Shown in pieces: positions 102-16,924 of a stretch of 18,608 bases of DNA. The stretch covers positions 1-18,608 of the IMG/VR virus record IMGVR_UViG_3300014911_000516; one strand, written 5' to 3'. Every line of letters begins with the position of its first letter. Positions within the stretch are counted from its first letter, which is position 1. The notes beneath the pieces are model-generated. The model was not told the DNA's origin, made no database searches, and was given only the letters and a program-made list of their open reading frames with translations. The position numbers were made by a program, and so were the translations under genes.

Positions 102-109
102 CGTTAGTT

Positions 110-1090: not shown

Positions 1091-1096
1091 TGTAAT

Positions 1097-2247: not shown

Positions 2248-2249
2248 AA

Positions 2250-2393
2250 GTGAAAGGGAGGGTAAAAGTCCTATTACTACGTTTCAGAACTACTGAAAGT
2301 AAAACGAAGTATCGAATACTTGTAGAATCCTTTAAAAAAATAAATAATACGAATAATGCAAGATTATTATTAGGGGAAAAGGATGATAAATAG
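2250..2393 (+). CDS. 47-aa basic hypothetical protein (MKGRVKVLLLRFRTTESKTKYRILVESFKKINNTNNARLLLGEKDDK)
   Basis: Not in the ORF track. GTG 2 nt after the upstream stop with AGGTG upstream; fills the intergenic gap and overlaps the start of the next gene. Confidence 0.45.
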   Translation: MKGRVKVLLLRFRTTESKTKYRILVESFKKINNTNNARLLLGEKDDK

Positions 2394-2763
2394 AGAAGAT
2401 GTAATATCCATTATCATAATTACTACCGCTTTTATACTGACATATAAAGGAATTCTAACTCCCGACCATTACCTTACGATTATCTCAGCCATATTAGCAT
2501 ACTATTTAGGTCAGACCATAAAGATGCATCAGGTTAATAAAGCACTAGCATATCGTGAAGGGATAACCAGATCATATCAGAGGATGATAAGGCGTTTTGG
2601 GGCATTCCTAATGATAAGCGGTATTACTCTGATAATTGAGAAATGGATAATCTCAGGAGCTACCTACACATTCCCACCGCATTTCCTTGATCATGGATTA
2701 ATTGGTTTAATACTGGAGATCATAGGATTCGTATTATTAATACGTAGAGAAAAGAAAAAGTAG
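2383..2763 (+). CDS. Four-TM membrane protein
   Basis: Two hydrophobic hairpins separated by a basic linker; basic C-terminus RREKKK. Confidence 0.75.
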   Translation: MINREDVISIIIITTAFILTYKGILTPDHYLTIISAILAYYLGQTIKMHQVNKALAYREGITRSYQRMIRRFGAFLMISGITLIIEKWIISGATYTFPPHFLDHGLIGLILEIIGFVLLIRREKKK

Positions 2764-3000
2764 GTGCTAGAAATGAATAAAAGGACAATAGCATACGTAA
2801 TTGCAATTATAATACATCTACTAATCGCTATGAAGGTATTTAGTATCATAACCTCTACGTTACAAATTGAGAATCCATACACTCTTGAAAATACATCTAA
2901 AATCGTATCAGCATTAGGAAGTGTAGCTGTATACCTTATAGTACTAGCAATCATAACAGGAGTAGCCTTAGCTTTTGCATTTCGTCTATTTCGCACGTAA
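2764..3000 (+). CDS. Small two-TM membrane protein (true start probably ATG 2773)
   Basis: IAYVIAIIIHLLIAM and VAVYLIVLAIITGVALAFAF; AGGTG lies upstream of ATG 2773. Confidence 0.7.
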   Translation: MLEMNKRTIAYVIAIIIHLLIAMKVFSIITSTLQIENPYTLENTSKIVSALGSVAVYLIVLAIITGVALAFAFRLFRT

Positions 3001-3042
3001 CAGATTTATTTTATTCTTTCATAATTCCCTCGGTGAATATAG

Positions 3043-3228
3043 ATGCCCAAGATTATCGAAGTTGAACTGAATGGTGAAAAGAAAAAAGGCATTCTGATAG
3101 AGAAAGTAAGACGTAGAAAACGAAAGAAAGAATATAAAGGACGTACATACGAATGGGAACAAAGGGAGATTATCGTTTACATTCCTAAAGAAATAGATTC
3201 AGAAAAATTCATTCTGATCCCATTATGA
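3043..3228 (+). CDS. Small basic beta-rich protein, possible nucleic-acid binding
   Basis: GGTGA SD; KVRRRKRKK basic patch; ATGA overlap with hjc. Confidence 0.7.
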   Translation: MPKIIEVELNGEKKKGILIEKVRRRKRKKEYKGRTYEWEQREIIVYIPKEIDSEKFILIPL

Positions 3229-3638
3229 CAAAACCTTACGATGTCGGGAGACGGTTCGAACAATACCTCGTACACCGTTTTAAGAGACTTGGATGGTTTA
3301 GTATAAGGACTCCTGCATCAGGACGTGGATGGCGTACTGGGTATACTCCTGATATTATCTGCATAAAAAACCGTAATATTCTCCTGATAGAATGTAAGGT
3401 TTTATCAGGTCCTCGAGCCTTGTATATTGAAAAGCCTAAAGTTCAGTCTTTAATAAAATTAGCTAAGCTTACTGGGGGACATGCCTATATTTGCGTCTAC
3501 TATCGTAAAGATAAGCTATACCGATTTATCGATCCTAGAGATCCCGAATACAATACGAATAAATACTATGGATGGAGTAAAACCTACGTCCTAGCTCAAG
3601 GAAAAACACTATACCAAATCATAAACCAATATTCTTAA
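3225..3638 (+). CDS. hjc: Archaeal-type Holliday junction resolvase (PD-(D/E)xK)
   Basis: GRRFE, RTPASG, PDII and LIECK match the Hjc/Hje signature; rudiviruses encode such a resolvase. Confidence 0.9.
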   Translation: MTKPYDVGRRFEQYLVHRFKRLGWFSIRTPASGRGWRTGYTPDIICIKNRNILLIECKVLSGPRALYIEKPKVQSLIKLAKLTGGHAYICVYYRKDKLYRFIDPRDPEYNTNKYYGWSKTYVLAQGKTLYQIINQYS

Positions 3639-3673
3639 ATATTCTTTAATAAATTATAAAGATAAGTGAAAAC

Positions 3674-4132
3674 ATGCCTAAACCAGCACGTTTAGGGCCT
3701 TATCGTATAGTAGCTTTTGCTATTGAAATTGATAAGTATAACATATTACGCGAGTTAGCATTCCATAAAGGAGTTACCCTTTCTGAGCTCCTTAGAGACA
3801 TCATCGATGATTATCTAAAGAAAAACGGTTTACTAAACGCTGAAATAGTCGCTGCAAATGGTGGCCTAAAGACACTTTCATTAATCGAGCAAAAACTCCT
3901 ATCTTCTGAATTAAATACGATTATGCAGGACTTAGAACGTCTATCAAAATACATTCTATCATGCCGTAGGGGGACTATAGAGTGGCATGATACGCTCGAA
4001 AAGATACGTTACAAAATACGTAAGGCCTTAACAATCATCCAGAAAATAGGCATCCCATCTGATAACACATTACGTAAGCTAAAACAGTATTCTGAATTCG
4101 TAGAAAAGCTAAGTGGTGGAAAAGAACAATAG
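3674..4132 (+). CDS. N-terminal RHH DNA-binding domain plus helical C-terminal domain
   Basis: RIVAFAIE-IDKYNILRELAFHKGVTLSELLRDIIDDYL is a CopG-like RHH pattern. Confidence 0.8.
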   Translation: MPKPARLGPYRIVAFAIEIDKYNILRELAFHKGVTLSELLRDIIDDYLKKNGLLNAEIVAANGGLKTLSLIEQKLLSSELNTIMQDLERLSKYILSCRRGTIEWHDTLEKIRYKIRKALTIIQKIGIPSDNTLRKLKQYSEFVEKLSGGKEQ

Positions 4133-4133
4133 C

Positions 4134-4883
4134 TTACGTCCTCTTTTTATATCCTATAAGCAGATATGAATGTGTAACCATCGCACGGCGATAACCTTTA
4201 TTCATAAGGCCTCGTCCTATTCGCGTCCTTATTAGAGGGACTGCCGTATGGAAAAATCTATAGACATGTACGGCTACTATTTTAAAGTATTTTCGGAGCA
4301 TTTCGAGATCTATTATATCGTGCAACCATAGGAAAAGATTATCAGATATTGGTGGGTAATAAAAGTCTTGACCGCGTAATATTACTCCTTGGCGACAGAC
4401 CCTGTGGAACTCTTTTATTACGTCTTCGGAGTAGAACTTCTTAATGTATAAAGGAGAGTGTGTTTCTGAAGTACCATAATCATCTCCACGTTTATCGGTA
4501 CGGGCTATTGGTGTAAATGGCGGATCGTAAACGATAAGATCGAAAACTTCATCCCTGAAAGGATAAGGAGGCTTTAAGAGATCGACTAGCATTTTCGTCC
4601 ATTTTGTCCTACGTACATCAGTAGGAAGGTAGAATATTTTACCATGATAATACCAATCGCCGTTTATCTCCACTAGGTAGTCGTGGAATTGGTAGTTTTC
4701 AGTACCGCATGTACAATCCCATATTGATTTACATTTTGGAAAATAATATCTGATTAAACAGTCTATGACTTCGTGTATCTTAACCTTTATCCCCGATATT
4801 ACCGAAAGTGGTGGCAATATAACGCCCGAAAGCGTCGTATAGCTTAAATCGTATATTACTTCAGACTCACTTTTACTACTCAT
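4134..4883 (-). CDS. Orphan SAM-dependent amino (N6-A/N4-C type) methyltransferase, probably acting on DNA
   Basis: Motif I-like IWDCTCG, motif IV FDLIVYDPPF, then GVILRGQD; no adjacent restriction endonuclease. Confidence 0.75.
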   Translation of the reverse strand: MSSKSESEVIYDLSYTTLSGVILPPLSVISGIKVKIHEVIDCLIRYYFPKCKSIWDCTCGTENYQFHDYLVEINGDWYYHGKIFYLPTDVRRTKWTKMLVDLLKPPYPFRDEVFDLIVYDPPFTPIARTDKRGDDYGTSETHSPLYIKKFYSEDVIKEFHRVCRQGVILRGQDFYYPPISDNLFLWLHDIIDLEMLRKYFKIVAVHVYRFFHTAVPLIRTRIGRGLMNKGYRRAMVTHSYLLIGYKKRT

Positions 4884-4909
4884 CGTAATATAAAAAACGT
4901 TATTCTTAC

Positions 4910-4917
4910 TATTTAAG
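4910..4917 (-). promoter_or_regulatory. TATA box CTTAAATA for a probably leaderless methyltransferase transcript
   Basis: Lies 26 nt upstream of ATG 4883; no SD visible. Confidence 0.55.
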
Positions 4918-4961
4918 ATTATCCCTGAGGGGAGAAAGAATATTATGAAAAAAGGAATGGT

Positions 4962-5150
4962 TTATGCAATCATCCGTTTATGTCTTGGTTTTATGTAACA
5001 TAAATACCTTCTTATGAGGATGCTTACTGCTCTTCTTATTGCCTCACTTCTAGATTCGTAGCGATTTTGTTTTACTAGGTAATCTATGTCTTCTACGTAT
5101 TTTTCGGGAAGACGTAATGTGATCTTCTTATACTTCACTCTTCTCTTCAT
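4962..5150 (-). CDS. RHH (CopG/Arc/MetJ) transcriptional regulator, 62 aa
   Basis: KITLRLPEKYVEDIDYLV..YESRSEAIRRAV; TATGGTGAA SD. Confidence 0.9.
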   Translation of the reverse strand: MKRRVKYKKITLRLPEKYVEDIDYLVKQNRYESRSEAIRRAVSILIRRYLCYIKPRHKRMIA

Positions 5151-5189
5151 ATTCTGTTCACCATAGAAAAATGTAGAAAAAGAGTTAGC

Positions 5190-5378
5190 TTATGCTATCA
5201 TTTTTTCATATCCATTTCTTTGTCGCCATAACTCCCTATTAATAAGATCACGTACGGCAACCCTTATTGCTTCACTTCTTGATGGGTAAAGTTTCATTTC
5301 GACTAATTTCTCTAAGTATTCTACGTACTTTTCGGGAAGATGTACACTTACTAATCTGAGATTCGATTTCTTACTCAT
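5190..5378 (-). CDS. RHH (CopG/Arc/MetJ) transcriptional regulator, 62 aa (start corrected from 5591 to 5378)
   Basis: MSKKSNLRLVSVHLPEKYVEYLEKLVEMKLYPSRSEAIRVAVRDLI; SD TATGGTGAA before ATG 5378 and a TATA box at 5414-5421. Confidence 0.9.
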   Translation of the reverse strand: MSKKSNLRLVSVHLPEKYVEYLEKLVEMKLYPSRSEAIRVAVRDLINRELWRQRNGYEKMIA

Positions 5379-5413
5379 ATTCCTTTCACCATAGGAGAAT
5401 ATTACCCGCGTTA

Positions 5414-5426
5414 TATTTAAGCTTTT
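5414..5426 (-). promoter_or_regulatory. BRE/TATA promoter AAAAGCTTAAATA of the tandem RHH genes
   Basis: Purine-rich BRE plus TTAAATA 35 nt upstream of ATG 5378; identical 13-mer at 6175-6187. Confidence 0.7.
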
Positions 5427-5439
5427 CTCCCTAGGAAAC

Positions 5440-5455
5440 TCCCGTATATACGGGA
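5440..5455. promoter_or_regulatory. Perfect 16-bp palindrome TCCCGTATATACGGGA, candidate operator
   Basis: Self-complementary; lies in the divergent intergenic region between the RHH pair and the wHTH gene. Confidence 0.6.
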
Positions 5456-5536
5456 TGAATAGTCGATATCTTCTTTGTATTATCCTCCAAAGGAGAACAC
5501 CATAAACATATATTAAGGAAGCATTCAAAATAAAGT

Positions 5537-5833
5537 ATGATGTCAGCAGACATAAAGTATTCTGATATAGAAAGACTTGTAGACTATGCAATTAAACAGA
5601 TGATACGTGAAGCACGTGGAACCTGTATAATGGTATATCCAAAAAAGATAGCAAAACGAGCTGGATTAAGTACAAAACCAGTAATACTATCCCTTATAGA
5701 CTACCGTTTACAAATGCTTAAAGAGAAAGGATTAATCAAGTTCTGGAAGCGTTCTGGTCATGCAAAGAAGTATATTATCCCAAATACGAGTCCATTATGG
5801 AAAGAAGCTAAAGGTGAAGGTGGTAAAACATGA
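5537..5833 (+). CDS. Winged helix-turn-helix DNA-binding protein
   Basis: YPKKIAKRAGLS...LQMLKEKGLIKFWKRSGHAKKYII fits HTH plus beta-wing; as recalled, resembles a small Thermoprotei family ending in SPLW. Confidence 0.7.
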   Translation: MMSADIKYSDIERLVDYAIKQMIREARGTCIMVYPKKIAKRAGLSTKPVILSLIDYRLQMLKEKGLIKFWKRSGHAKKYIIPNTSPLWKEAKGEGGKT

Positions 5834-6111
5834 TTAGAGAACTACTCTCTACTATAGACTTCGAGATAAGAACATTTGTACAAGTAAGTAGACTAACATC
5901 CTATAGAAACCACTTAAAGTACATGTTCAAAAAATGGAAAAAAGGCTTTCTCATCTTAATCTTTACCAAAGATAACAGAGTAAAAGTACTTAGAATAAAG
6001 AGGTACTTCATGACAATACCATTAGTAATACTACTACGAATAATCTATCATCGATCTTGGAAAGGATATTTCGTTTTTAACTTAGATCTTCTTCCTAAAT
6101 CCTACTCCTAA
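5830..6111 (+). CDS. Basic hypothetical protein
   Basis: ATGA overlap with the wHTH gene, GGTGG upstream, followed by a T-tract. Confidence 0.6.
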   Translation: MIRELLSTIDFEIRTFVQVSRLTSYRNHLKYMFKKWKKGFLILIFTKDNRVKVLRIKRYFMTIPLVILLRIIYHRSWKGYFVFNLDLLPKSYS

Positions 6112-6112
6112 C

Positions 6113-6125
6113 TCTTTTTTTCTTT
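6113..6125 (+). terminator. Oligo(T) terminator
   Basis: tctttttttcttt just after the stop at 6111. Confidence 0.55.
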
Positions 6126-6174
6126 CAGAGGTCCATAGCGTATATACGTTTTGGATCTCCCTTACTTTTCGCCA

Positions 6175-6208
6175 AAAAGCTTAAATAGGAGGTATACCTA
6201 AGGTATAC
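6175..6208 (+). promoter_or_regulatory. BRE/TATA (6175-6187) followed by the inverted repeat GTATACCT-A-AGGTATAC (6192-6208)
   Basis: Read directly; the repeat lies between the TATA box and the GGTGA SD of 6222. Confidence 0.65.
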
Positions 6209-6221
6209 TCGGTGAATACCT

Positions 6222-6680
6222 ATGCAGAAGAAAATTAAATGGACGACCATAAAAGTCCCGACAGAGGTAAGGAATATCGTTAAGAAATTAATGGAAGAAG
6301 AAAAGAAACCTGCATGGAAGATAATAGTTGAGTCAGTTTTATGGTATAACAGGATAAAACGTAGGCCTTATGAGAAAGCAGAGTTACCCGTGACTGAAAA
6401 GATATCATGGTATATAGCAAAATTATGCATGTCAGTAGGGGCATTCAAAGAAAATCCTACAAAAGAAAACTTAGAGCGTTTACAAAAAACATTAACACAG
6501 ATCAAAGAAAGGTTAAAGATTGATACGGATATTGTATACAGAACTGCAGTAGCTTATCAACGTAAACCTGAAACTGAAAACAGAATTGAATTAAACATGG
6601 CTACAAAATCGGTAGTTTTCGATATCATTTATACATATATCTACAAATACGAAATGAAAGAAATGACCACTAGCTCCTAA
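6222..6680 (+). CDS. Protein with N-terminal RHH-like domain and helical C-terminal domain
   Basis: WTTIKVPTEVRNIVKKLMEEEKKPAWKIIVESV is a strand-helix-helix pattern; GGTGA SD. Confidence 0.7.
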   Translation: MQKKIKWTTIKVPTEVRNIVKKLMEEEKKPAWKIIVESVLWYNRIKRRPYEKAELPVTEKISWYIAKLCMSVGAFKENPTKENLERLQKTLTQIKERLKIDTDIVYRTAVAYQRKPETENRIELNMATKSVVFDIIYTYIYKYEMKEMTTSS

Positions 6681-6730
6681 GGAATAAATTTTAATACTTT
6701 TTCACCAATTCTTTTTAGCGGGATATTGCT

Positions 6731-7462
6731 ATGTGTATGTCTATGTTGTCTCAAAGTCTTAAAATTGAAGAGGTAGACTACACCGAAGACTACGACTGGC
6801 TAATTATCCTCGATGCTTGTCGCTATGACTATTTTGTAAAGTTATGGAAAATAGGGAAAATCGAACCGCGATTATCGCTAGGATCATGCACCTTGGAAGT
6901 ATTATCTAAAATATCCAGAATACCTCATAGCGTATGCCTAACTGGGCATCCATTCGTATTGTCATTCAGAGAAAAATTCGATAAGGTGATAGATGCGGGA
7001 TTTGATTATACGCTAGGCACTTGTCCACCTTGGTATATGCTGACGGCGTTTAATCTTTTCTATAATAAAATGAAACCGTATAAACGGAAGATCCTATGGT
7101 TTCTGCAACCGCATCATCCTCTCTTATCTAATCCTACATTACTGATTAAAATATTCGAGGATGAGGAAGGGAAACGAATGACGCCACAGGAAAAGGTAAC
7201 GAAAGCCTATCAGGAAGCATATAGAAAAGGGATATTATCGAAGGCCTACCGAAGCAATCTAGCGTTAGTGCTTGATTATGTATCAGAGATAATAAAGAAA
7301 GTAGATGGAATTGTCGTGATTACATCCGATCATGGAGAAGGATTAGGAGAGCCATTACGCCCAGAGGATAAACCAGTATTCAGTCATCCATGTGGGCGTG
7401 AAGAGTGGGAGCTACGTTTAATTCCTTGGTGTGTTATAGATACTAGTGAATTATGGTGGTGA
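6731..7462 (+). CDS. Alkaline phosphatase/sulfatase-superfamily hydrolase or transferase
   Basis: LIILDACRYD, SLGSCT (Thr nucleophile position), QPHHP, VITSDHGE, SHP, IPW. Confidence 0.85.
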   Translation: MCMSMLSQSLKIEEVDYTEDYDWLIILDACRYDYFVKLWKIGKIEPRLSLGSCTLEVLSKISRIPHSVCLTGHPFVLSFREKFDKVIDAGFDYTLGTCPPWYMLTAFNLFYNKMKPYKRKILWFLQPHHPLLSNPTLLIKIFEDEEGKRMTPQEKVTKAYQEAYRKGILSKAYRSNLALVLDYVSEIIKKVDGIVVITSDHGEGLGEPLRPEDKPVFSHPCGREEWELRLIPWCVIDTSELWW

Positions 7463-8352
7463 ACGTGGGAGAGATATTAACATCCTATGATGGTTTTAAG
7501 TTTTATGTAGAAAAGGAATATCATAAAGATCCGTTACGTTATGATGAACGCACAGTTCTTACAGTACTTGTAATGTTAGGAAAAAGAGATCGTATATTCG
7601 TAGATGTAGGGGCAGGAGTAGGAAGATACACAGTAAGAATGTCAAAGTGGTATGAGCTCGTATATGCAATTGAGCCCTTACCAGAACATGTAAGAATCCT
7701 TAAGAAAAATCTAGAGCTAAATAATGTAGATAATGTCATAGTAATACCCTATGCAGCCTACGATAAAAGCACTACACTACCGATATACTTAGGAGGCTTG
7801 TCATCATCTACCGTTAGGAGACATGATATGAAAGACTATATTATAGTAAAAGCAGAAAGATTAGATAAGCTAGTACATAAAGCAGATGTTATAAAAATCG
7901 ATGTAGAGGGAGCTGAATTCGAGGTAGTTAAAGGAGCTGAAAAACTACTAAAGTCAGATAAACCATTCTTAGTAATAGAACATCACGATTTTAGACCCGA
8001 CTGGAAAGAGAAACTTAAGGGAACATTCCAGAAAGTCTTTAACTACCTATCTTCACTAGGTTATGTCCCACTATTTACTACATACGTACATCGATGCTGG
8101 ATACATAAAGATAGGCTAAATGATTTATCAGATGAAGCTTTACATTATCTTCTCTGGAGACATTGGGCTAACGTATGTTACTTTAACTTAAAGCTTGGAC
8201 GTGATTGGTACTATGGTTTACCTCTCACTTGGTGGTGGGGCTATGACTTTATAGAGTTTCTCGAAGAGTTACCTATACATATACTTGAGGAAAAAGAATG
8301 GAGCGATCCACAACATATATTAAGGATCTCAAAGGAAGTAATGGTGATATAA
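7453..8352 (+). CDS. FkbM-family SAM-dependent methyltransferase with a Trp-rich C-terminal extension
   Basis: FVDVGAGVG, YAIEP, RLD, IKIDVEGAEFEVVKGA, PFLVIEHH. Confidence 0.9.
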   Translation: MVVNVGEILTSYDGFKFYVEKEYHKDPLRYDERTVLTVLVMLGKRDRIFVDVGAGVGRYTVRMSKWYELVYAIEPLPEHVRILKKNLELNNVDNVIVIPYAAYDKSTTLPIYLGGLSSSTVRRHDMKDYIIVKAERLDKLVHKADVIKIDVEGAEFEVVKGAEKLLKSDKPFLVIEHHDFRPDWKEKLKGTFQKVFNYLSSLGYVPLFTTYVHRCWIHKDRLNDLSDEALHYLLWRHWANVCYFNLKLGRDWYYGLPLTWWWGYDFIEFLEELPIHILEEKEWSDPQHILRISKEVMVI

Positions 8353-8649
8353 ATGAGTACGGAGAATGAAGTAGAGGAGAAGGTAGATGAAATAGTTGAA
8401 ATATGCTCTAAACTTTTCATGAAGGTGAAAAAGGAGATAGATAAAATATCAGAATGCATCGATGAGATAGAAGATAACGAGATAAAAGTATCGTTTCTAG
8501 GACACATCGTTTACATATTAATGTCACGATCGAAACTCTCACTTCATAACTTACTTGGATTACTAGAAACATTAAAAATTGTAATAGTGTCAAAAGTTGA
8601 GGAAAGCATAAGTACATCCAAAAAATACAGTACTAGCTACTTCGCTTAA
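8353..8649 (+). CDS. Hypothetical helical protein, acidic N-terminus
   Basis: Abuts the FkbM stop; GGTGA SD. Confidence 0.7.
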   Translation: MSTENEVEEKVDEIVEICSKLFMKVKKEIDKISECIDEIEDNEIKVSFLGHIVYILMSRSKLSLHNLLGLLETLKIVIVSKVEESISTSKKYSTSYFA

Positions 8650-8674
8650 AAGAAAATAAAATTTCTAACGTTTT

Positions 8675-9028
8675 TTAGAAGAATTCCGTACTTTCTTCTC
8701 CCCTTCTCCTCCTCCTTCTCCTTAGCCTAGAGTATTCTTCACGAATAGCTGATAACTGGAACATCTCTACTTCAGTTTTAATTGCACTTTCTAGATCCTT
8801 CATTAACTGTGTCACATTAGTGGATAACCCAGCAAGCTGTCTATGTATTGCTATTGAATTTGCAATCTTCTTTAATAATTCACTAAATTCTTCGAAGGAA
8901 ATCTCACCACGTGCAATACTTCGAGCTGCATCACGTAGTATTCCGAACAGCTCAGCTTTTTGTGATGCAAAGTAAGATCCTGAAAGGTATTTATTCAATA
9001 CGTTTAAAATTGGTGAAGGAGTACTCAT
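8675..9028 (-). CDS. Helical protein with a C-terminal poly-Arg tract
   Basis: SRLRRRRRRRGEE; GGAGGTGG/AGGAG upstream; ATGA overlap with 9025..9171. Confidence 0.8.
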   Translation of the reverse strand: MSTPSPILNVLNKYLSGSYFASQKAELFGILRDAARSIARGEISFEEFSELLKKIANSIAIHRQLAGLSTNVTQLMKDLESAIKTEVEMFQLSAIREEYSRLRRRRRRRGEESTEFF

Positions 9029-9171
9029 CTCCTACCCACCTCCACTTTTTCCATCCACTCTGCTATTATCCTCAGCATTACATCTTGAACTTCCATGTTC
9101 ATCTCCTTCGCTACCTGCATCAGCCTCTGATATACTTTGTCTGGAAGTATTATTTCTATCTTTACTGCCAT
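9025..9171 (-). CDS. 48-aa RHH-like protein (MAVKIEIILPDKVYQRLMQVAKEMNMEVQDVMLRIIAEWMEKVEVGRR)
   Basis: Not in the ORF track. GAGGAG SD upstream, CopG-type pattern IEIILPDxxYxRLxxxAxxxxMxVxDVxxxII, and its TGA overlaps the ATG of 8675..9028. Confidence 0.8.
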   Translation of the reverse strand: MAVKIEIILPDKVYQRLMQVAKEMNMEVQDVMLRIIAEWMEKVEVGRR

Positions 9172-9529
9172 CCAAGATCTCCTCAATTAATATAACATCA
9201 TTTGATTTTAATATCTTTCTATCGATTTGCCTGAAGTGATGATATGCACCATCGTGATCGTATGCTGATCTGTATAACTGTTTTCTAAATCTTTCTGCTA
9301 GGTGCTTATCGATCGCAGTAACTGAAAATTCAATAGTTATTCTATATCCTGTAGGTAGTGGATTTATAGATGATGATACTGTAGTGTGAATTCCAGATCT
9401 GATTAATTGTCTAGCAACATAGTAAGCATAGGATACGATAGAAGTCATTCGCTTCTGGATGAGTGCTTGTAACAACTTTATCATTCTCAGATCTGGAAAC
9501 TCTACATCTTGATGAATGTGGATAGGCAT
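9032..9529 (-). CDS. Hypothetical alpha/beta protein; last ~46 codons overlap the 48-aa RHH gene
   Basis: GAGGGG SD; divergent from the MCP operon. Confidence 0.75.
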   Translation of the reverse strand: MPIHIHQDVEFPDLRMIKLLQALIQKRMTSIVSYAYYVARQLIRSGIHTTVSSSINPLPTGYRITIEFSVTAIDKHLAERFRKQLYRSAYDHDGAYHHFRQIDRKILKSNDVILIEEILDGSKDRNNTSRQSISEADAGSEGDEHGSSRCNAEDNSRVDGKSGGG

Positions 9530-9684
9530 CTTCTACCCCCTCATATTTAGTTAGAGTTTACATCACATTATAATAGACTGTTATAGGAGTATATATACAC
9601 TATTCAATATTTTTTTGTATTAATATTTTTACACCATTTCTTAAAACTTGATTTCTTTCTTTCGTTACTCGAGGCGATGGGGAT

Positions 9685-10056
9685 ATGCCTGGTGTTAAAG
9701 ACTTAAGAGAGCGAGTAGATAAGTACATAGCTAAGACACCAGCCGATCAAACTGGTACAAGATACGGGGCTGTTAAGGACTTGGCTGTAGGAAGGTTTAC
9801 AGCGTATGCTTCAAGCATAGTAGAATTCAGAGAACTAGTAAGGAATGTACTAAATAAAGAAGGCGTTCCAGCCGGACAACAGGGAGTTTACTTTGCATTT
9901 GCTATGAGGCTTCGTAGTAAGGCCTTCAGCCACTCTGGTACTACTCTCAAGGATTACGTGAATGGTATGATACAGGACTTCACCACAGGTAAGGGAGCTG
10001 ATCCCACCATACTGAAGAAAATAGCATCCATGATATTAGGAGAGGTGATAAGCTAA
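9685..10056 (+). CDS. Major capsid protein 1, SIRV2 fold
   Basis: VRNVLNKEGVPAGQQGVYFAFA..SGTTL..NG..ADPTILKKI aligns with recalled SIRV2 P134 (VSAVLTQYGITGPNRAIYQGFG..SGPAL..NG..ANPQVLDAV); basic N-terminal helix. Confidence 0.9.
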   Translation: MPGVKDLRERVDKYIAKTPADQTGTRYGAVKDLAVGRFTAYASSIVEFRELVRNVLNKEGVPAGQQGVYFAFAMRLRSKAFSHSGTTLKDYVNGMIQDFTTGKGADPTILKKIASMILGEVIS

Positions 10057-10072
10057 AGGAGGTGAGTGAGAG

Positions 10073-10447
10073 ATGCCCGGAGTTAAAAGATTTGGTGATA
10101 TGAGAGAGAAATACGAGCTAAAATACGATGGTGCAAACGTAACTGCTAGGTTAACGGCCGTAGAGGAGATAAAGAACAGAAGGTATGAAGCATTCTCTTC
10201 ACCAATCGTCAACATAATCGAAACTGTTAGGACGATACTCGAGAGTAATGGCGTCCCAGCTGGTCAGCATGGTATCTACTATGCCTTTGCTGAAGTGATT
10301 CAAAAATACACCTTCAGCCACTCTGGTGCTACCTTAGACTTACTAATATCTGGAAAGAAGAGTGAATGGGTAACTGCCCACAAGGCCGATCCAGCAATCC
10401 TCGACAAGATTGTATTAGCTATAATAGGAGCATTACCACCTTATTAG
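10073..10447 (+). CDS. Major capsid protein 2, SIRV2 fold
   Basis: Gapless paralog of MCP1 (49/123 identities, hand count); SGATLDLLISGKKSEWVTAHKADPAILDKIV matches the rudiviral MCP C-terminus; GGAGGTGA SD. Confidence 0.92.
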   Translation: MPGVKRFGDMREKYELKYDGANVTARLTAVEEIKNRRYEAFSSPIVNIIETVRTILESNGVPAGQHGIYYAFAEVIQKYTFSHSGATLDLLISGKKSEWVTAHKADPAILDKIVLAIIGALPPY

Positions 10448-10499
10448 AGTCCTTAGCTTCACAATATACAGTACTGTAAGCGTACTTAATCACATTCAC

Positions 10500-10531
10500 T
10501 TTTTTTACTTTTTTCTTTTCTTTCTTTTTTT
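10500..10531 (+). terminator. Long oligo(T) terminator of the MCP operon
   Basis: About 30 nt of almost pure T, ~50 nt after the MCP2 stop. Confidence 0.7.
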
Positions 10532-10581
10532 ACACGTAACATATTCTAGTAGGGAGAACTTCTTTTCACTAGGGAGAATAT

Positions 10582-11628
10582 ATGAGTACTGTAATTGTTA
10601 CATCTCATCGATCTACATCTTTGCAAAAAGTGAGTAATGACATTAAAACGGCATTAGAGAGTAATGGAAGAGAAGTAAAGAATATTCTAGGATTTCCAAG
10701 TGTAAGAAGTTCTGATTATGCAAATTGCAGAAACGTGCTCTTCGTAATGACGTTCGATACTATCTGGGCTAGGCCTTACTTCTGTGCTTACTACTTACTA
10801 AAATCAGATGGATGGAACACAATATTCTACACTACTATCGAGGGAAAACCACTAAGATTCCTAGGAGATGAATGGATATATCGTGAATGTGAGTTCATAG
10901 CTAATTCGAATTATACTAAAAAGAAAATCGCTAAAGAAGGTGGTAGGGTTTTAGACGTAATTCATCATGGAATAGATACCCGTAAATACAGGAATTTAAA
11001 GTTTATGGGTAGAATAATGCGAAGTGAACTAGGTGCTTCAGAAAAGGAATTCATCGTTCTTTATATTGCTGGGGGGTATCGAAGAAAAGGACATGATTTA
11101 TTCAGATCTGTCATCCAGTACGTAGGAAAGAAGGATAATACAATTAAATTTGTAGTAGTGACACAGCCTAATGCAATTCAATATTATGCAGATCTAGAGA
11201 ATTGCATTGTTTCAGATGAATTTGGAAATTTACCAGAAGAAAAGATAATAGGATTATTCCATGCATGTGATCTCTATGCTCAGCCCTCTCTAAGCGAGGG
11301 ATTTGGATTACCAGTCTTGGAAGCACTAGCTTGTGGAAAGGTAGTAGTACATCCAGATTATGAGCCTCTCTCAGAGATAACTACAAAGTCTACAAGCTAT
11401 CGATGTAAGGTAGCTACTGTTTCAGAATGGAGTGGTGAGCGAGAAGAACATACTGGAATCATATATGAATTACACCTTTACGATCCAAATGAGTTTGGTG
11501 ATCTCATCATACAAGCTAAAGATGAATTAATGAAAGAGAGAAAAGAAAAGGAGAGATTATGTCTAAATCGTGCTAAACAATTCGATATGCATAAAACATA
11601 TAAGAAGTTCTTAAAGTATATCCAGTAG
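10582..11628 (+). CDS. GT4 (GT-B fold) glycosyltransferase, like SIRV ORF335
   Basis: RKG, PSLSEGFGLPVLEA (EX7E), FYTTxxGxP, NS, HGI, EFG; directly follows the MCP as in rudiviruses. Confidence 0.93.
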   Translation: MSTVIVTSHRSTSLQKVSNDIKTALESNGREVKNILGFPSVRSSDYANCRNVLFVMTFDTIWARPYFCAYYLLKSDGWNTIFYTTIEGKPLRFLGDEWIYRECEFIANSNYTKKKIAKEGGRVLDVIHHGIDTRKYRNLKFMGRIMRSELGASEKEFIVLYIAGGYRRKGHDLFRSVIQYVGKKDNTIKFVVVTQPNAIQYYADLENCIVSDEFGNLPEEKIIGLFHACDLYAQPSLSEGFGLPVLEALACGKVVVHPDYEPLSEITTKSTSYRCKVATVSEWSGEREEHTGIIYELHLYDPNEFGDLIIQAKDELMKERKEKERLCLNRAKQFDMHKTYKKFLKYIQ

Positions 11629-11640
11629 GAGGTAGGTATT

Positions 11641-12045
11641 ATGGATGAGACTATACAAAAAGAAGAGAAAAAGGAAACTACTACTCCTTCCACCACCCCC
11701 CAAAATGTAACACAGCCTACGCCACCAGCCACACCTACATCAATCTATAGAAAACCCGAATATCAACTTCAGCCACCTACACAGCTTACACCACCTACTC
11801 CTCCACAGCCTGTTAGGAGAGAACTTACGGAAGAAGAGAAAGCATTCTTAGATGCATTAGGATCTGTAGTTTCTTCGGCACAGGAACTATCATACGTACT
11901 GGCCTCAATTGATCCCGATTTGCTTCAGAAATATTCTGATCTACGGGAATTGTTCGAGAGCGCTAGGAATGTTGTACGCTCTGTATATCGATTTCATAAA
12001 CTAATTAAGGAGAGATCCAGGGGGAGTACCAGGGGGAGTAGCTGA
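11641..12045 (+). CDS. Protein with P/T/Q-rich disordered N-terminus and helical hairpin C-terminus
   Basis: GGAGGT SD; low-complexity residues ~13-57. Confidence 0.8.
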   Translation: MDETIQKEEKKETTTPSTTPQNVTQPTPPATPTSIYRKPEYQLQPPTQLTPPTPPQPVRRELTEEEKAFLDALGSVVSSAQELSYVLASIDPDLLQKYSDLRELFESARNVVRSVYRFHKLIKERSRGSTRGSS

Positions 12046-12320
12046 TGGAAAATAGGGTAGTTATTTACATAACTCCATATACTTTTTATTATAAAGGATG
12101 TAAGGTAACCATTTGGGGAGCTAAACGTTTTGATCTCCCTACTGGTGAGAGAAGTTATCTTCTCTCACTTGAAGTAGAATGGAGAGGGTATAGATCTAGA
12201 CAATTTATACTAGAGGTTTCTGATAACCAAGACTTCAAGAACAAACTTGATCTGGAAATCGCTAGGATGAAGTTAGCAATTCTTACGGGAAATCTTTCTC
12301 CCTTTGTGAAAGTGCGTTAG
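12045..12320 (+). CDS. Hypothetical beta-sheet plus helix protein
   Basis: TGATG overlap with the upstream gene; GGGGAG SD. Confidence 0.75.
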   Translation: MENRVVIYITPYTFYYKGCKVTIWGAKRFDLPTGERSYLLSLEVEWRGYRSRQFILEVSDNQDFKNKLDLEIARMKLAILTGNLSPFVKVR

Positions 12321-12360
12321 GCGAATATAATATATATCGGTTTTATACTATATCAAATAG

Positions 12361-15300
12361 GTGAATATGGATTATCGGGAGAAATTAGAGTTTGAGAATG
12401 TAGATATAGCAGATGTAGAATACTTAATGAAAATGCTTTCAGTAGTTAGTGATAACTCTCTTGACTACCCTATTATGGATGAGATTGATATTACAAAACT
12501 GGATCTAGACGCTCTAGTAGTGTCGGAGTTTGGTATTACGGATATCATAGGACAAATATCCTCATGGTTATATGAAAAGCTTCAAGCATTCTCATCGTGG
12601 ATAACATCAGGAATTGAAACGATAGTTAACGCATTATGGGAGAACTTCATAAAACCAGCTATTAACGTTATAGATGCTGGTGTAGGATGGATTAAAGATC
12701 AGGTATATTCAATATGGGATAGACTACAGAATATTGGTGATATATTAAGTTCCATAGGAGGTACTATAGTTGATATCTTCAATACAGTAAAGGAAGGATT
12801 CATAAATCTAATAAAGGAAATACCATCTGCTGTAGGAAGATTCATAAATAGTGTGAAGGATCTTATAATATCAAAGATTGAAGCGATTCCAGATCTAATC
12901 ATTAATGGAGTGCGATCGTTTATTGATGCTATTTCTTCGGGGATTGACTTTTTGAAGGAAGGATTGCAGAATGTTACAAACTTCCTAGGAAACATAGGAA
13001 TGGCACTATCCAACATATTCTCATCGATAAAAGAAGGTTTTAGTGTACTTAAGGGATATATTGAAGGAGCATTAGCAACATTCAGTAGTAAGATTGCTGG
13101 TGCTATTGATACTGTAAGAACAGCATTTATGGAATCTATGCAAACTGTAGCTACATGGATACAACAGGCATCAGGAGCGATACAAGGCTTCGTAAATGGA
13201 ATATTAAAACTTCCAGAATGGTTTAGGGAGCATTTAGTAGCACCATTAACTGAGGCTATGTCGAAATTCGCCTCATGGATATGGGAGCATCTACCAGAGG
13301 GTATAAGGTCATTCTTTGAGAAGGTAAGAGATGCTATAATAGGATTTTATGAAGGATTTAAGTCATTTATTGCTGATCCTAAGGGATGGTTTATCAGAAA
13401 TGTATGGGAGCCTCTGAAAGAGCGATTAAGGGATATTGGAGAATGGATTTGGGAAAGACTTCCTGAAGGAGTAAAAACATTCTTCGAAAGAGCGAAGGAA
13501 TTCTTTACAGTTGATTTGGTAAACTTCTTTACCAAAACATTACCTGAAAAGATACGCGATCTAGTGGACACTATTAAAACAATTCCTGAAAAGATTAAAG
13601 AGATTCCAGATAAAATAAAGGAGATGGCCGATAATGTAGCAAATCTTCCTGAAATGATAAAGAGTGCTTTTGAAAAGATAGGTGAATGGATTTGGGAAAA
13701 ATTACCAGAAAATATACGTAATTTCATAGATAAAGCTAGAGACTTCATCACAGATGTCTATGATCAGTTTAAGGAGTTCATCAAAGATCCAAAGGGAAAG
13801 TTTTACGATGTACTGAAAGGCGTAGGTGAAAAGATATTAGCAGGTTTGGGTTGGATTTGGGATAAAGTCTTGGATATAGTAACATTCATTAAAGCTAAAG
13901 TAATCGAGGCCTGTAAGACAATATCAACATGGATCTATAGTATTGCAAAAACAATAAGTGAGACGTTTAAGAAGATGTTTATTGAAACATTTATAGTTCC
14001 AATCAAAAACGTAAAATCTACATTCGTAGAACTACTTAAAACAGCTTTTGACGAGGCATTCGCACAAGAGGAAGGCGGTGAATTATGGTTATTATCATCA
14101 TTAATCCCAGAGATCTATAACGTAATGTATCCTATAATAATTATTCCAGTACTCGCTAAAGGCGTGGCTGAAGCTACGGGAGAGCAAGAAGTTTCGGGTA
14201 AGATAGCCGGTCTTGGTGGGGCGATTAAAGTTAAGCTAGGTAAACTGATTGGCGAAGTAGCTGATACGTTAAAAGACTTGGTTTCAAGGACTATAGATGA
14301 GATTGCATTAGGACTTTCATTTAATCTATTCGAGCCTTTACGGTACGCTGTAAGGCCTTTATCGAAACGTCTACTTACACCTATATTTATGAAACAATAC
14401 GGTATAGATGCCTTCTTTGAGGTGCCTTCGTTTAGTGAACTTAGGAAGTTGCTACAAAGGTACTATCCAACTACTAAGGATGAAAAGGAAGATTTTGAAA
14501 AAATGCGGAAATACTTTAGGACAATGCTAGAAATAAGAGGATTACCACAGTCATATATAAATGAAGTAATGAAGACGCTCGAGGAATGGTCTATTGAAAT
14601 CGAAGATCGCTTTACCGAATATACCAAAGTAAAGCGTAAAATCCCGCTTTCGCCACTTTACGAAATGCCTTCGATATCTGAAGTATGTACATTTATGGTA
14701 CGTGATATAATTAAAAAGCCTGAAGATTTCATAAAATGGTTAAATAAGCTTGGCGTCAGTCGTGATATAGCACTATTCAATTATCTATTACACTATCGCT
14801 ATCCTTCTCCTGAGAAAATAGCCGATTTCGTATGGCGAGGTATAGCAGGAGTATTATGGAATCCTGATGCGTCCATGGATACCGAGGTAATGAGCGCTTT
14901 CGAACTTAAGCCTGAAAAGATGAAAGCAGTTGCTCCCAGACAACTCAATTTCGAAGGAAAGACATTATTCGAGATGCTTAAACATTATATGAAGTGGCAT
15001 GATTATGCAAGATTTCCTTGGGCGGCCGGTTGGCCTACCGATAACGCTATCATCACAGATCTCCTAGCTGACATACCCGGCAAAATCGATTTGAGATGGA
15101 TGACCCGATGGGGTATATTCGAATATTGGAGTGCTAAGAAAATTGGATTAGAAACTTCTTTAGAAGAGATTATGCAAAAGTTGCTTCCACCACAAGGTGA
15201 GACTAAAGCCGATGATGTAATACAGTATTTGTATAAACAGCTTACAGAGCCTACTCCACTCTTCGATATCCGGCAATTCTGTAGGACATTACAGGCTACA

Positions 15301-16689
15301 GGATTGCATCCATACTGGATTCCTTGGGTAGGAATTGCAGAATCGATAAATGCTCTTACAGAAGAGAGGACGTTACTAAGAACTGGATTTATGAATCTCT
15401 TTGAAAAAGGCCTATTCAGTTTGAATACATTAAATCAACTATTGGCAGGATTCTTCACAATTAAATTTAAGGTAGGATATTATGACGTGAAGGATTATAA
15501 ATGGAAGTATTCAGATGTAGAAGTACCAGTTGCGTTCCTACCAGCAGAGAGCAAATTACTTGAGCTACGATCGATATTTGATAGGATGTTAGAATTATAC
15601 GCAGAGATATATTCTGAGATCAGGAAATCAATACGTTATGGAATATATGATGTAAAAAGCGCTAAGAAGATATTGCAGAAGATGATCACAGATCTAGCTA
15701 CTTATGGTAGTGGGTTAATAAAAAGCGTTACTGGAAGAAAGTTAACTCCAGAAATCGATGCGGGATACATAGATATATGGACAAACATTGAATCACAAAT
15801 ACAGGATATCGAAAAGAAGATAGCAATACGTAGTGTAGCACAAGGTGTATTAGGGTGGTTATTATACAGGTTAGCTTATGGGTGGGTAACTGAGGAAGAT
15901 TTCAGATCTGTAGTAAACATACTTACAAGCAAATTCTACGTATACAAAGAGTTAGGAGATGCCGTAGTAGAACTAGGTAAGAAGTTAGCCGAAATAATGA
16001 GGAAGCAAGAGCGTGAAGTTTATGTACCTACGCCTTCACAGATTGCGACATTTTCAGAATACATGGATATTCCTGATAATGTGATTAAGGAAGCTTTCAA
16101 GGAGAGGAATATTGTAGAGCCTTGGGCCTCATTCTGGTATAAATACATAACTACTAGAGCTATATCCAGCGAGACCAATACATTAGTGTCTACATTTAGG
16201 AGAATCGTAGAATACTTCGCCGTTCCTAAGGACTTAGTAGATAGTGTAAAGGATCTAATGGTTAAAGGTGGCTGGACCTCCAAAGAAATGCCTATATTCG
16301 ATCTAGATCTCCAGTTACGTAGATTCTACAGGATAATGAGGACGTTTGTGCCTACCATACGTGGTTTCGTAACTGATGCGATGTATATGGATGATTGGGA
16401 GAGCAAGTTGCAAGATTGGCTCACGATACGAGGAATTGACCCAAAGAAATACGAGAAACAGGTGAACTACTATAAGCACTTGATAAAAGCTAGGAAGGCG
16501 TATCGTAGATTCAGCTGGTATCTGACTAGGCTACTAAACGCTTACTGTGCTGGAGTAATTAATGAAACACAAGTAAGACAAAAATTACAAAGATTCAAAC
16601 CTTATGGATTGTCAGATGAAGAGATTGAAATAATAATTGATGGATTCAGAATGGAGAAAGCATATCGTGAAGCAATATATGGATCTTAA
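12361..16689 (+). CDS. Large minor virion/terminal-fibre protein, like SIRV2 ORF1070
   Basis: Long amphipathic helical N-terminal region, then EQEVSGKIAGLGGAIKVKLGKL (recalled ORF1070 EVEIDLAPVGLGGKIPIKFGEI), EP, PSF and RGLP; repeated P[ST] helix-start motifs. Start uncertain (GTG 12361 or ATG 12367). Confidence 0.8.
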   Translation: MNMDYREKLEFENVDIADVEYLMKMLSVVSDNSLDYPIMDEIDITKLDLDALVVSEFGITDIIGQISSWLYEKLQAFSSWITSGIETIVNALWENFIKPAINVIDAGVGWIKDQVYSIWDRLQNIGDILSSIGGTIVDIFNTVKEGFINLIKEIPSAVGRFINSVKDLIISKIEAIPDLIINGVRSFIDAISSGIDFLKEGLQNVTNFLGNIGMALSNIFSSIKEGFSVLKGYIEGALATFSSKIAGAIDTVRTAFMESMQTVATWIQQASGAIQGFVNGILKLPEWFREHLVAPLTEAMSKFASWIWEHLPEGIRSFFEKVRDAIIGFYEGFKSFIADPKGWFIRNVWEPLKERLRDIGEWIWERLPEGVKTFFERAKEFFTVDLVNFFTKTLPEKIRDLVDTIKTIPEKIKEIPDKIKEMADNVANLPEMIKSAFEKIGEWIWEKLPENIRNFIDKARDFITDVYDQFKEFIKDPKGKFYDVLKGVGEKILAGLGWIWDKVLDIVTFIKAKVIEACKTISTWIYSIAKTISETFKKMFIETFIVPIKNVKSTFVELLKTAFDEAFAQEEGGELWLLSSLIPEIYNVMYPIIIIPVLAKGVAEATGEQEVSGKIAGLGGAIKVKLGKLIGEVADTLKDLVSRTIDEIALGLSFNLFEPLRYAVRPLSKRLLTPIFMKQYGIDAFFEVPSFSELRKLLQRYYPTTKDEKEDFEKMRKYFRTMLEIRGLPQSYINEVMKTLEEWSIEIEDRFTEYTKVKRKIPLSPLYEMPSISEVCTFMVRDIIKKPEDFIKWLNKLGVSRDIALFNYLLHYRYPSPEKIADFVWRGIAGVLWNPDASMDTEVMSAFELKPEKMKAVAPRQLNFEGKTLFEMLKHYMKWHDYARFPWAAGWPTDNAIITDLLADIPGKIDLRWMTRWGIFEYWSAKKIGLETSLEEIMQKLLPPQGETKADDVIQYLYKQLTEPTPLFDIRQFCRTLQATGLHPYWIPWVGIAESINALTEERTLLRTGFMNLFEKGLFSLNTLNQLLAGFFTIKFKVGYYDVKDYKWKYSDVEVPVAFLPAESKLLELRSIFDRMLELYAEIYSEIRKSIRYGIYDVKSAKKILQKMITDLATYGSGLIKSVTGRKLTPEIDAGYIDIWTNIESQIQDIEKKIAIRSVAQGVLGWLLYRLAYGWVTEEDFRSVVNILTSKFYVYKELGDAVVELGKKLAEIMRKQEREVYVPTPSQIATFSEYMDIPDNVIKEAFKERNIVEPWASFWYKYITTRAISSETNTLVSTFRRIVEYFAVPKDLVDSVKDLMVKGGWTSKEMPIFDLDLQLRRFYRIMRTFVPTIRGFVTDAMYMDDWESKLQDWLTIRGIDPKKYEKQVNYYKHLIKARKAYRRFSWYLTRLLNAYCAGVINETQVRQKLQRFKPYGLSDEEIEIIIDGFRMEKAYREAIYGS

Positions 16690-16714
16690 TAGTATAATTT
16701 ATTGAGGTGATTAG

Positions 16715-16921: not shown

Positions 16922-16924
16922 TAA

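Follow-up and report, generated by a model that had tools for sequence, protein, structure and literature searches.

Rod-shaped archaeal viruses are known to encode glycosyltransferases, and the capsid proteins of the rudivirus SIRV have been reported to be glycosylated (PMC9319562). Virus-encoded glycan tailoring is thus already known as such, and the glycan chemistry of archaeal viruses is almost unexplored. Among the described enzymes acting on glycans, the EptA-type transferases of the alkaline-phosphatase (AlkP) superfamily all decorate glycans or glycolipids with a phospho-substituent, FkbM-family enzymes such as V. cholerae RfbT are sugar O-methyltransferases, and Agl7 of Haloferax volcanii is needed for the sulfation of a dolichol-phosphate-linked hexose (PMC3892788). 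Here we analyze a stretch of 18,608 nucleotides from the IMG/VR virus record IMGVR_UViG_3300014911_000516 (positions 1 to 18,608; hereafter, the window), which is part of the genome of an uncultured rudivirus-like (Ligamenvirales) rod-shaped archaeal virus from marine sediment and hydrothermal vents. The window carries a two-gene cassette composed of overlapping genes for an AlkP-like enzyme (P0001) and an FkbM-type methyltransferase dependent on S-adenosylmethionine (SAM; P0002). We consider it moderately probable that this cassette adds a phospho- or sulfoester and a methyl group to a glycan of the virion or of the host surface, beside the family 4 glycosyltransferase (GT4) of the virus. A previous interpretation made from the sequence without database searches (the sequence-only reading) had proposed a glycan-decoration kit formed by the AlkP-like, FkbM, and GT4 genes, with the major capsid protein (MCP) genes between the last two; all these genes were found where it had placed them. 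It had also treated an AlkP enzyme as not known from cultured rudiviruses, and indeed no P0001 homologue was detected by tblastn, with either a viral or a Haloferax query, in 50,697 deposited phage and archaeal-virus records; a gene of the AlkP fold was not found in deposited archaeal virus genomes.

The product of the open reading frame (ORF) at 6731-7462 was confidently assigned to the AlkP superfamily on the basis of its structural model. This call could not be made from profiles alone, since the only Pfam signal, from Sulfatase (PF00884), was sub-threshold (E 0.05, 13.3 bits against a cut-off of 25), and a sequence search of P0001 against PDB chains gave nothing meaningful. The AlphaFold2 model, built on a 97-sequence alignment, has a predicted local distance difference test score (pLDDT) of 96.2 and a predicted template-modelling score (pTM) of 0.92, and its AlkP-superfamily matches in an exhaustive structural comparison span residues 20-243. 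Fifty-seven PDB representatives were matched at Z of at least 8, and all of the matches listed (50/50) are AlkP-superfamily enzymes. The top match is EptA (5fgn; Z 15.1, root-mean-square deviation 3.3 Å over 197 residues), followed by MCR-1 (Z 14.1), formylglycine sulfatases (Z 12-14), LtaS and GacH (Z 11.5), and BcsG (Z 11.2), whereas PglZ of the bacteriophage exclusion (BREX) system scores far lower (9zn5, Z 10.1). P0001 thus resembles in fold the whole set of EptA/LptA, MCR-1, EptC, LtaS, GacH, and BcsG (Z 15.1-11.2, ~180-197 residues).

Ten residues are invariant in the 97 sequences of the P0001 family (D28, R31, Q126, P127, H128, P130, D200, H201, H219, and P232), and position 54, located at a helix N-terminus, is occupied by Thr in 78/97 and by Ser in 18/97 of them. 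The catalytic set predicted on the model comprises D28, T54 as the nucleophile, H128 (in the motif QPHxP), D200-H201, and H219. This is the Thr-nucleophile, single- or di-metal constellation of EptA, MCR-1, and LtaS, the mapping onto the EptA-type Glu/Thr/His/Asp-His/His site being made by sequence order and fold match, without residue-level superposition; the Thr-nucleophile, EptA/LtaS-like architecture suggested by the sequence-only reading was borne out in this respect. Like EptA-type transferases, P0001 has a metal-binding acidic residue, a Thr nucleophile at a helix start, His-x-Pro, Asp-His, and a distal His. It differs from them in its low sequence identity (13-19%) and in the first metal ligand, which is Asp instead of Glu and belongs to a D-x-x-R-x-D motif similar to that of nucleotide pyrophosphatases/phosphodiesterases. 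With formylglycine (type I) sulfatases of PF00884, P0001 shares the fold and, together with several of its homologues, weak or partial Pfam Sulfatase matches; unlike these enzymes, it has Thr/Ser at the nucleophile position, reaches half their length, and is without their C-terminal subdomain. A formylglycine motif C/S-x-P-x-R was not found in P0001, the nucleophile of which stands in the context G-S-C-T-L-E-V with neither Pro at +2 nor Arg at +4 (the family consensus is G-S-x-T-x-E-F), and the formylglycine-sulfatase reading was rejected on this ground. No hydrophobic, transmembrane, or signal segment was found in the P0001 sequence, the core of which begins at about residue 20, and the protein is therefore predicted to be a cytoplasmic, soluble, minimal AlkP-fold enzyme. 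It is EptA/LtaS-type at the catalytic site, yet outside that membrane-enzyme family, and is not a formylglycine sulfatase.

About 45 close homologues of P0001 (45-57% identity, ~230 aa) were found on metagenomic contigs of up to ~48 kb, and the P0001 protein itself also occurs on a 30,270-bp contig. The wider family consists of ~300-aa homologues with 30-38% identity and includes 2,018 representative clusters at E<=1e-3 (763 at E<=1e-10). Most of its members are sub-threshold in Pfam, a few just pass PF00884, and no above-threshold NCBIfam match was obtained for the five members tested. Consequently, neither Pfam nor NCBIfam offers a dedicated model for the family, and the source annotations of its members are generic. 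Among predicted structures of viral proteins, significant matches to P0001 were limited to giant-virus sulfatases and phosphatases; one 'phosphodiesterase' of a haloarchaeal tailed virus matched weakly.

The second gene of the cassette encodes P0002 (METHYLTRANSFERASE), which is a clear FkbM-family member (PF05050, 85 bits against 22.7; TIGR01444, 101 bits against 37.7) and in this resembles sugar O-methyltransferases such as RfbT, although the match to the RfbT family itself is sub-threshold (21.8 bits against a cut-off of 27.9, E 1.3e-4). Across 30 sequences, residues D51, G53, G57, E74, K148, D150, E152, and G153 are invariant, and both the SAM and KxDxEGxE motifs are kept. The P0002 model (pLDDT 94) has the FkbM structure 2py6 as its best Foldseek match. 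Unlike other FkbM-family enzymes, P0002 carries a conserved Trp-rich helical C-terminal extension of ~80 aa (residues ~222-299), which is covered by no structural match and is limited to ~17 homologues of the viral clade on viral-sized contigs and to the fusion protein P0123 described below. No rudivirus record was present among the 30 matches listed in a tblastn search with the FkbM gene.

As the sequence-only reading had noticed, the two genes overlap: the FkbM start codon precedes the end of the AlkP-like ORF by 10 nt, within ...ATGGTGGTGA, and the latter ORF ends with E-L-W-W-stop. The FkbM gene thus appears to be translationally coupled to the AlkP-like gene. Owing to this overlap, to the start of a 98-aa ORF directly after the FkbM stop codon, and to an A/T-rich box upstream, the three ORFs look like one transcription unit; the box is a possible archaeal promoter of the cassette, and the 98-aa ORF, for which no significant Pfam or PHROG match was found, is probably co-transcribed with it. 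A search of RNA sequencing runs returned none that contains the region. Structure prediction for a complex of P0001 and P0002 gave no answer (score 0.00), which is evidence neither for nor against binding.

The pairing of the two genes was analyzed in ten independent contexts of viral-clade AlkP-like genes, with 45-57% identity to P0001. An FkbM gene adjoins the AlkP-like gene or is fused to it in 8/10 of these contexts. Direct adjacency was observed in the window, in L001 (where the genes are convergent and overlapping), and in L005, L010, L043, L208, and L209, the last having the AlkP/FkbM order reversed and a GT4 gene abutting. The fusion is represented by P0123, a 512-aa metagenomic protein from outside the window, in which an FkbM domain (residues 1-285) that shares the Trp-rich extension of P0002 precedes an AlkP-like domain (residues 288-511, 52% identical to P0001), i.e., in the order opposite to that of the genes in the window. 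The remaining two contexts contain methyltransferases from families other than FkbM: L042/L207 has, in place of FkbM, a Methyltransf_23 gene that adjoins the AlkP-like gene divergently, and L003 has a Methyltransf_11 gene 1.7 kb upstream of the AlkP-like gene (the upstream genes being GT4, GT4, Methyltransf_11, an N6/N4 DNA methylase, and a small ORF). In L003, the end of the AlkP-like gene is overlapped, in the place of FkbM, by a gene for a Kelch-repeat (beta-propeller) protein (L003:10695-11585, plus strand). More distant family members show further combinations with methyltransferase (MT) families, namely GT4, AlkP-like, and MT23 in L024; DegT sugar aminotransferase, MT24, AlkP-like, and FkbM in L014, an unrelated 65-kb virus; and GT4, MT23, and AlkP-like in the cellular contig L007. 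Thus, the pairing occurs in both gene orders and both orientations, and the real module is an AlkP-like gene with a SAM methyltransferase, not a three-gene unit. In the viral-clade contexts, the AlkP-like gene is always near a methyltransferase, whereas the methyltransferase is sometimes alone with GT4. This asymmetry suggests that methylation is required for the AlkP-like step or completes it, e.g., by methylating the newly added group or a neighbouring hydroxyl.

A gene of the PAPS-reductase family (PF01507) was observed ~3 kb from the AlkP-FkbM pair in a related virus (L208:4777-5505, minus strand) and, in a cellular glycan cluster, ~6 kb away from the homologue (L007:833-1651, minus strand); these neighbours are a possible hint at sulfur or sulfate chemistry.

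The distribution of the cassette among close relatives is patchy. The closest relatives of the window by capsid protein and GT4, L203 and L204 (capsid proteins 53-58% identical, MCP1 55-58%, GT4 49%), have a conserved upstream ORF and the capsid genes with no cassette in the interval. The contig of L203, which is that of the closest IMG/VR relative, harbors elsewhere (L011) an AlkP-like copy of the cellular type, 35% identical to P0001 and outside the viral clade, which is located near a MoxR-type AAA ATPase (bpMoxR, 187 bits) with a 379-aa ORF in between (7154-8347, minus strand; 9908-10690, plus strand). In a quick tree, the viral AlkP-like proteins form one clade with a Shimodaira-Hasegawa-like approximate likelihood ratio test (SH-aLRT) support of 99 and a stem length of 0.75. 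Sequence divergence was compared in run X4, which represents another sediment metagenome. Contigs over 6843-8113 differ from the window by 1.4-5% (~95-98.6% identity) and have a higher depth, whereas contigs over the capsid and GT4 genes (9240-11502) differ by 12-14% (~86-88% identity), the pieces being short and the comparison suggestive only. This contrast suggests either a recent exchange of the cassette between co-occurring viruses or a much stronger constraint on it. The patchy occurrence in close relatives and the lower divergence than in the flank fit a mobile two-gene accessory unit upstream of a conserved capsid-GT4 module.

Cellular homologues of P0001 were identified in 544 GTDB species, mostly Halobacteria, with further carriers among Hadarchaeota, Thermoproteota, Methanosarcinales, Nanohaloarchaea, and scattered bacteria. 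In 77 cellular GTDB loci, GT4 genes occur within 8 kb of the homologue in 46 cases, often abutting it, and FkbM genes in 7. Clustering of the neighbours in 80 loci revealed mainly GT4 (44) and Wzx-type flippases (40), as well as bona fide sulfatase-domain proteins (20), NAD epimerases (13), UDP-glucose dehydrogenase (12), sugar nucleotidyltransferase (11), Phosphodiest-type AlkP proteins (10), GFO/IDH/MocA oxidoreductases, and GT61. Tandem arrays contain up to six paralogues per locus, and 20/22 Haloferax species have between 1 and 6 copies. With these GT4 and flippase neighbours and tandem paralogues, the cellular family bears the signatures of glycan-tailoring enzymes. The cellular proteins have an N-terminal extension of ~45 aa, which is basic and not hydrophobic, and in most members a C-terminal '...LGY' tail, both of which are missing from the viral clade. 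None of the Haloferax homologues carries the name Agl7 in the source, where they are labelled 'hypothetical', 'sulfatase N-terminal domain', 'LTA synthase family', and 'alkaline phosphatase family'.

A single family copy is present in the Haloferax genome G022, on a contig that we take to be the chromosome of H. volcanii DS2. The locus starts with a 405-aa PF00884 protein on the minus strand, followed by the 296-aa family member, GT4, GT2, a 240-aa ORF, a transposase, a 589-aa ORF, GT4, a 388-aa ORF, a Wzx flippase, an RmlC-like epimerase, a nucleotidyltransferase, RmlD, a dehydratase, a NUDIX protein, and GT2. The published agl5-agl15 'low-salt' N-glycan cluster spans HVO_2046-2061 and includes HVO_2053 (agl5), HVO_2055 (agl15, the flippase), HVO_2056-2059 (agl13/11/14/12), HVO_2060 (agl8), and HVO_2061 (agl6) (PMC3892788). 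Since the gene order in G022 matches that of the published cluster one-to-one, the family member could be counted back to HVO_2047, and by this mapping it is probably the neighbour of Agl7 (HVO_2046). The agl13/11/14/12 genes are presumably those for rhamnose. The presumed HVO_2047 is 28% identical to P0001 (E 2e-25). The presumed Agl7 is paralogous but more distant (202 columns aligned by hhalign at a probability of 97.4%) and shares with the P0001 family the motifs D-x-x-R-x-D, H-x-P, and S-D-H-G-E and the C-terminal LGY tail, which may serve as a common docking motif. The assignment of Agl7 to the P0001 family itself was considered and rejected, as the gene-order mapping identifies Agl7 with the neighbouring PF00884 paralogue. 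The statement of the sequence-only reading that Haloferax AglP is of the FkbM type may be right, and a PF05050 match located 1.386 Mb along the presumed chromosome of H. volcanii is consistent with it.

Given this context, the reading that we favor is one in which the two cassette enzymes would share a glycan substrate, which the viral GT4, host enzymes, or both would assemble on a lipid carrier, a virion protein, or a host-surface protein. Through a covalent Thr intermediate, the AlkP-like enzyme would attach a phosphoester or sulfoester group to it (removal of such a group being less likely), and the methyltransferase would O-methylate the sugar or the added substituent, so that the virion or the surface of the infected cell would display a decorated and capped glycan. 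By analogy, the AlkP-like step could be phospho transfer, as for EptA/LtaS, sulfate transfer, as suggested by the genetics of Agl7, or hydrolysis; we lean toward transfer because the context is biosynthetic. A glycan-decoration pathway, as proposed by the sequence-only reading, is thus supported by the glycan clusters of the cellular relatives and by the methyltransferase linkage, tight to the point of fusion, although not in the form of a three-gene unit.

Several findings weigh against this reading. Deletion of HVO_2047 (the family member by the gene-order mapping), the only deletion made in the family, caused no detectable glycan change (PMC3892788). The characterised EptA/LtaS-type enzymes all have an N-terminal multi-pass membrane domain, are extracytoplasmic, and use phospholipid donors; as P0001 is soluble and has no membrane domain, hydrolysis would be equally compatible with its site. 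In fold searches with P0002, class-I methyltransferases acting on RNA, tRNA, and small molecules score level with FkbM, so that the substrate class is not readable from the fold. As for co-occurrence, the AlkP-like gene of L011 has no methyltransferase seen nearby, and FkbM genes of the clade with the extension have no AlkP-like gene within 5 kb in L210, where FkbM overlaps GT4, and in L211.

The glycan context may also be retained with a different chemistry, in which the AlkP-like enzyme is a hydrolase, e.g., a phosphodiesterase, pyrophosphatase, or sulfatase-like esterase, that would cut back a phospho- or sulfo-substituent or serve in the recycling of a nucleotide-sugar or of a lipid-pyrophosphate carrier, thereby remodelling or sabotaging host glycosylation. 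The Asp/Thr/His/Asp-His/His site is common to hydrolases and transferases of the AlkP superfamily, a soluble P0001 is unlike the known transferases, a language-model lead pointed to a 'STM4013/SEN3800 family hydrolase' cluster (score 0.88), and the weak NCBIfam match is to a phosphoric/sulfuric ester hydrolase. Nevertheless, the pairing and fusion with a methyltransferase and the flippase-bearing biosynthetic clusters suit decorating better than degrading, and the paralogue Agl7 is genetically tied to the addition of sulfate, not to its removal (PMC3892788); we therefore regard a hydrolase as rather unlikely. The nearest solved folds (EptA, MCR-1, LtaS, GacH, and BcsG) belong to enzymes all of which handle phospholipid-derived head groups, and FkbM itself is a small-molecule O-methyltransferase, which would agree with the remodelling of a lipid head group or another small molecule, e.g., by phosphoethanolamine-type transfer and methylation on archaeal lipids destined for the host membrane or an envelope. 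This is quite improbable given that P0001 is devoid of a membrane domain, that cellular homologues lie near glycosyltransferases, flippases, and nucleotide-sugar enzymes and not near lipid-synthesis genes, and that rudivirus-type virions are non-enveloped.

A role in nucleic acid modification, or in defence or counter-defence as a miniature analogue of the BREX pair PglZ and PglX, would accommodate the presence of PglZ among the structural matches, the sub-threshold PglZ Pfam matches of two cellular homologues (16.6 and 21.4 bits against a cut-off of 25), the DNA methylase just upstream in L003, and the TRM5/TYW2 methyltransferase domain for which P0002 exceeds the Pfam cut-off (33.9 bits against 28). 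We consider it very improbable: EptA and the sulfatases outrank PglZ by a wide margin, P0002 matches FkbM with a much higher score than TRM5, no BREX or nucleotide-metabolism genes were found near the cassette, and the neighbourhoods of the cellular homologues are overwhelmingly devoted to glycan biosynthesis. P0001 has no PglZ (PF08665) match and no BREX genes were found in the window or related loci, and the BREX/PglZ reading of P0001 was rejected on score and gene context. DNA hypermodification, which the sequence-only reading had named as an alternative, gained no support beyond the lone hint of the methylase in L003, and a DNA-modification role of the cassette is unlikely. Finally, the adjacency may be meaningless, with two unrelated accessory genes brought together by chance, as the occurrence of the FkbM clade without an AlkP-like gene might suggest. 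Such a coincidence is extremely doubtful in view of the adjacency or fusion in 8/10 contexts in both orders and orientations, of the methyltransferases of other families in the remaining two, and of the recurrence of the pairing in the unrelated virus L014 and on the cellular contig L007.

An extension of the favored reading, which we offer as speculative and itself rather improbable, is that the P0001 family is a previously unrecognised class of soluble, Thr-nucleophile AlkP-fold phospho- or sulfotransferases acting on cytoplasmic lipid-linked oligosaccharides, with Agl7-type proteins as their sulfating cousins, and that viruses captured such an enzyme and welded it to a methyltransferase for the capping of capsid or host-surface glycans; in that case, the methylated phospho- or sulfo-cap could contribute to virion stability or hinder superinfection and recognition by the host. 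If the family does comprise AlkP-fold sulfo- or phosphotransferases, it would help explain the sulfation or phosphorylation of archaeal glycans. The cassette points to a further layer of decoration, with methyl groups and phospho- or sulfo-esters. Through it, a large enzyme family of archaeal N-glycan and polysaccharide clusters is defined that is still uncharacterised and likely includes HVO_2047 beside the unexplained 'sulfation' gene agl7. As H. volcanii is genetically tractable, the function of the family is directly testable, and biochemistry and structural work could conveniently start from the naturally fused FkbM-AlkP protein and from the viral proteins, which are small and soluble.

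The GT4 gene starts 2,230 bp past the FkbM stop codon, close to the ~2.2 kb noted in the sequence-only reading. Its product has an intact EX7E motif (E-G-F-G-L-P-V-L-E) and, in addition to Glycos_transf_1, matches phrog_2170 (125 bits). Full-length tblastn matches (at least 80% coverage; 99% query coverage) were obtained in 42 rudivirus records with 25-28% identity, including SIRV2 ORF335/gp28 (27%, E 2e-21), and the position of the gene after the capsid genes corresponds to that of SIRV2 ORF335 after ORF134. With a homologue in every cultured rudivirus and the same place as SIRV2 ORF335, GT4 looks to be a core gene and not part of an accessory kit; judging from these matches, it is the ancestral rudivirus core glycosyltransferase. 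It is kept in relatives with or without the cassette, e.g., in L203 and L204, which lack the cassette at this place. The proposal of the sequence-only reading that the three genes form one co-inherited kit is therefore not supported as it stands; co-occurrence in related contigs, the check that it had named, was observed for the AlkP-like gene and a methyltransferase (10/10 contexts), whereas GT4 and FkbM also occur independently of the AlkP-like gene. A metagenome scan with the GT4 alignment, the pattern of which is a generic GT4 motif, yielded one true relative (L123).

Both capsid proteins exceed the Sulf_coat_C cut-off of 25.2 bits and are 40% identical to each other. MCP1 is, by context, a candidate glycan carrier, and MCP2 contains one N-x-T sequon (NVT near residue 22). 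Two tandem MCP genes are also present in L203 and L204, and one was seen in the fetched parts of L010, L024, and L003. A scan of IMG/VR with a single capsid-protein sequence detected no relatives. The window differs from cultured rudiviruses in its AlkP-like gene and its two tandem capsid-protein paralogues.

The features of the window and of the presumed H. volcanii locus are given in Table 1. The order of the MCP, GT4, small-ORF, 1,442-aa, and 448-aa genes is common to the window, L203, and L204; the same genes occur in L205 and L206, but there the 448-aa homologue precedes the large protein. The SIRV-type MCP, the core glycosyltransferase, a large candidate for a terminal-fibre-like protein, and the kept gene order are consistent with membership in Ligamenvirales. 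A DNA-level search with a 6.5-kb region against deposited phage and archaeal-virus genomes returned no match.

Table 1. Coordinates of features in the window and, where prefixed with L122, in the presumed Haloferax volcanii locus
Feature	Coordinates	Strand	Remarks
RNase-H-superfamily protein	365-1090	+	RNase-H-like; 54-55% identical to proteins of L042 and L043
Transglutaminase-like (cysteine protease fold) protein	1528-2247	+	54-55% identical to proteins of L042 and L043
Hjc Holliday-junction resolvase	3225-3638	+	upstream of cassette
Ribbon-helix-helix (RHH) regulators	upstream of AlkP-like ORF	+	
TATA-like A/T-rich box	6683..6697	+	~35-48 nt before AlkP-like ATG; read from sequence
AlkP-like enzyme P0001, 243 aa	6731..7462	+	model fold and conserved site
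FkbM SAM methyltransferase P0002, 299 aa	7453..8352	+	PF05050, TIGR01444
Small acidic ORF, 98 aa	8353..8649	+	ATG directly after FkbM stop codon
Two minus-strand ORFs	after 98-aa ORF	-	
MCP paralogue 1 (rudivirus/SIRV type)	9685..10056	+	Sulf_coat_C, 37.8 bits
MCP paralogue 2	10073..10447	+	Sulf_coat_C, 45.2 bits
GT4 (GT-B) glycosyltransferase	10582..11628	+	Glycos_transf_1, 63.5 bits (against 26.4)
Two small ORFs, 1,442-aa protein, 448-aa protein	3' of GT4	+	
Presumed Agl7, 405 aa, PF00884	L122:6438-7655	-	divergent neighbour of presumed HVO_2047
Presumed HVO_2047, 296 aa, P0001 family	L122:7838-8728	+	abuts GT4

Two further genes were observed in related viral contigs. In L207, the closest relative of the window, a 102-aa protein of the Cas Csx3 family (PF09620) is encoded between the RHH and RNase-H-like genes (3943-4251, minus strand) and might function as an anti-CRISPR ring nuclease of the virus. 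A LAGLIDADG homing-endonuclease gene is located at L210:10048-10701 (minus strand).

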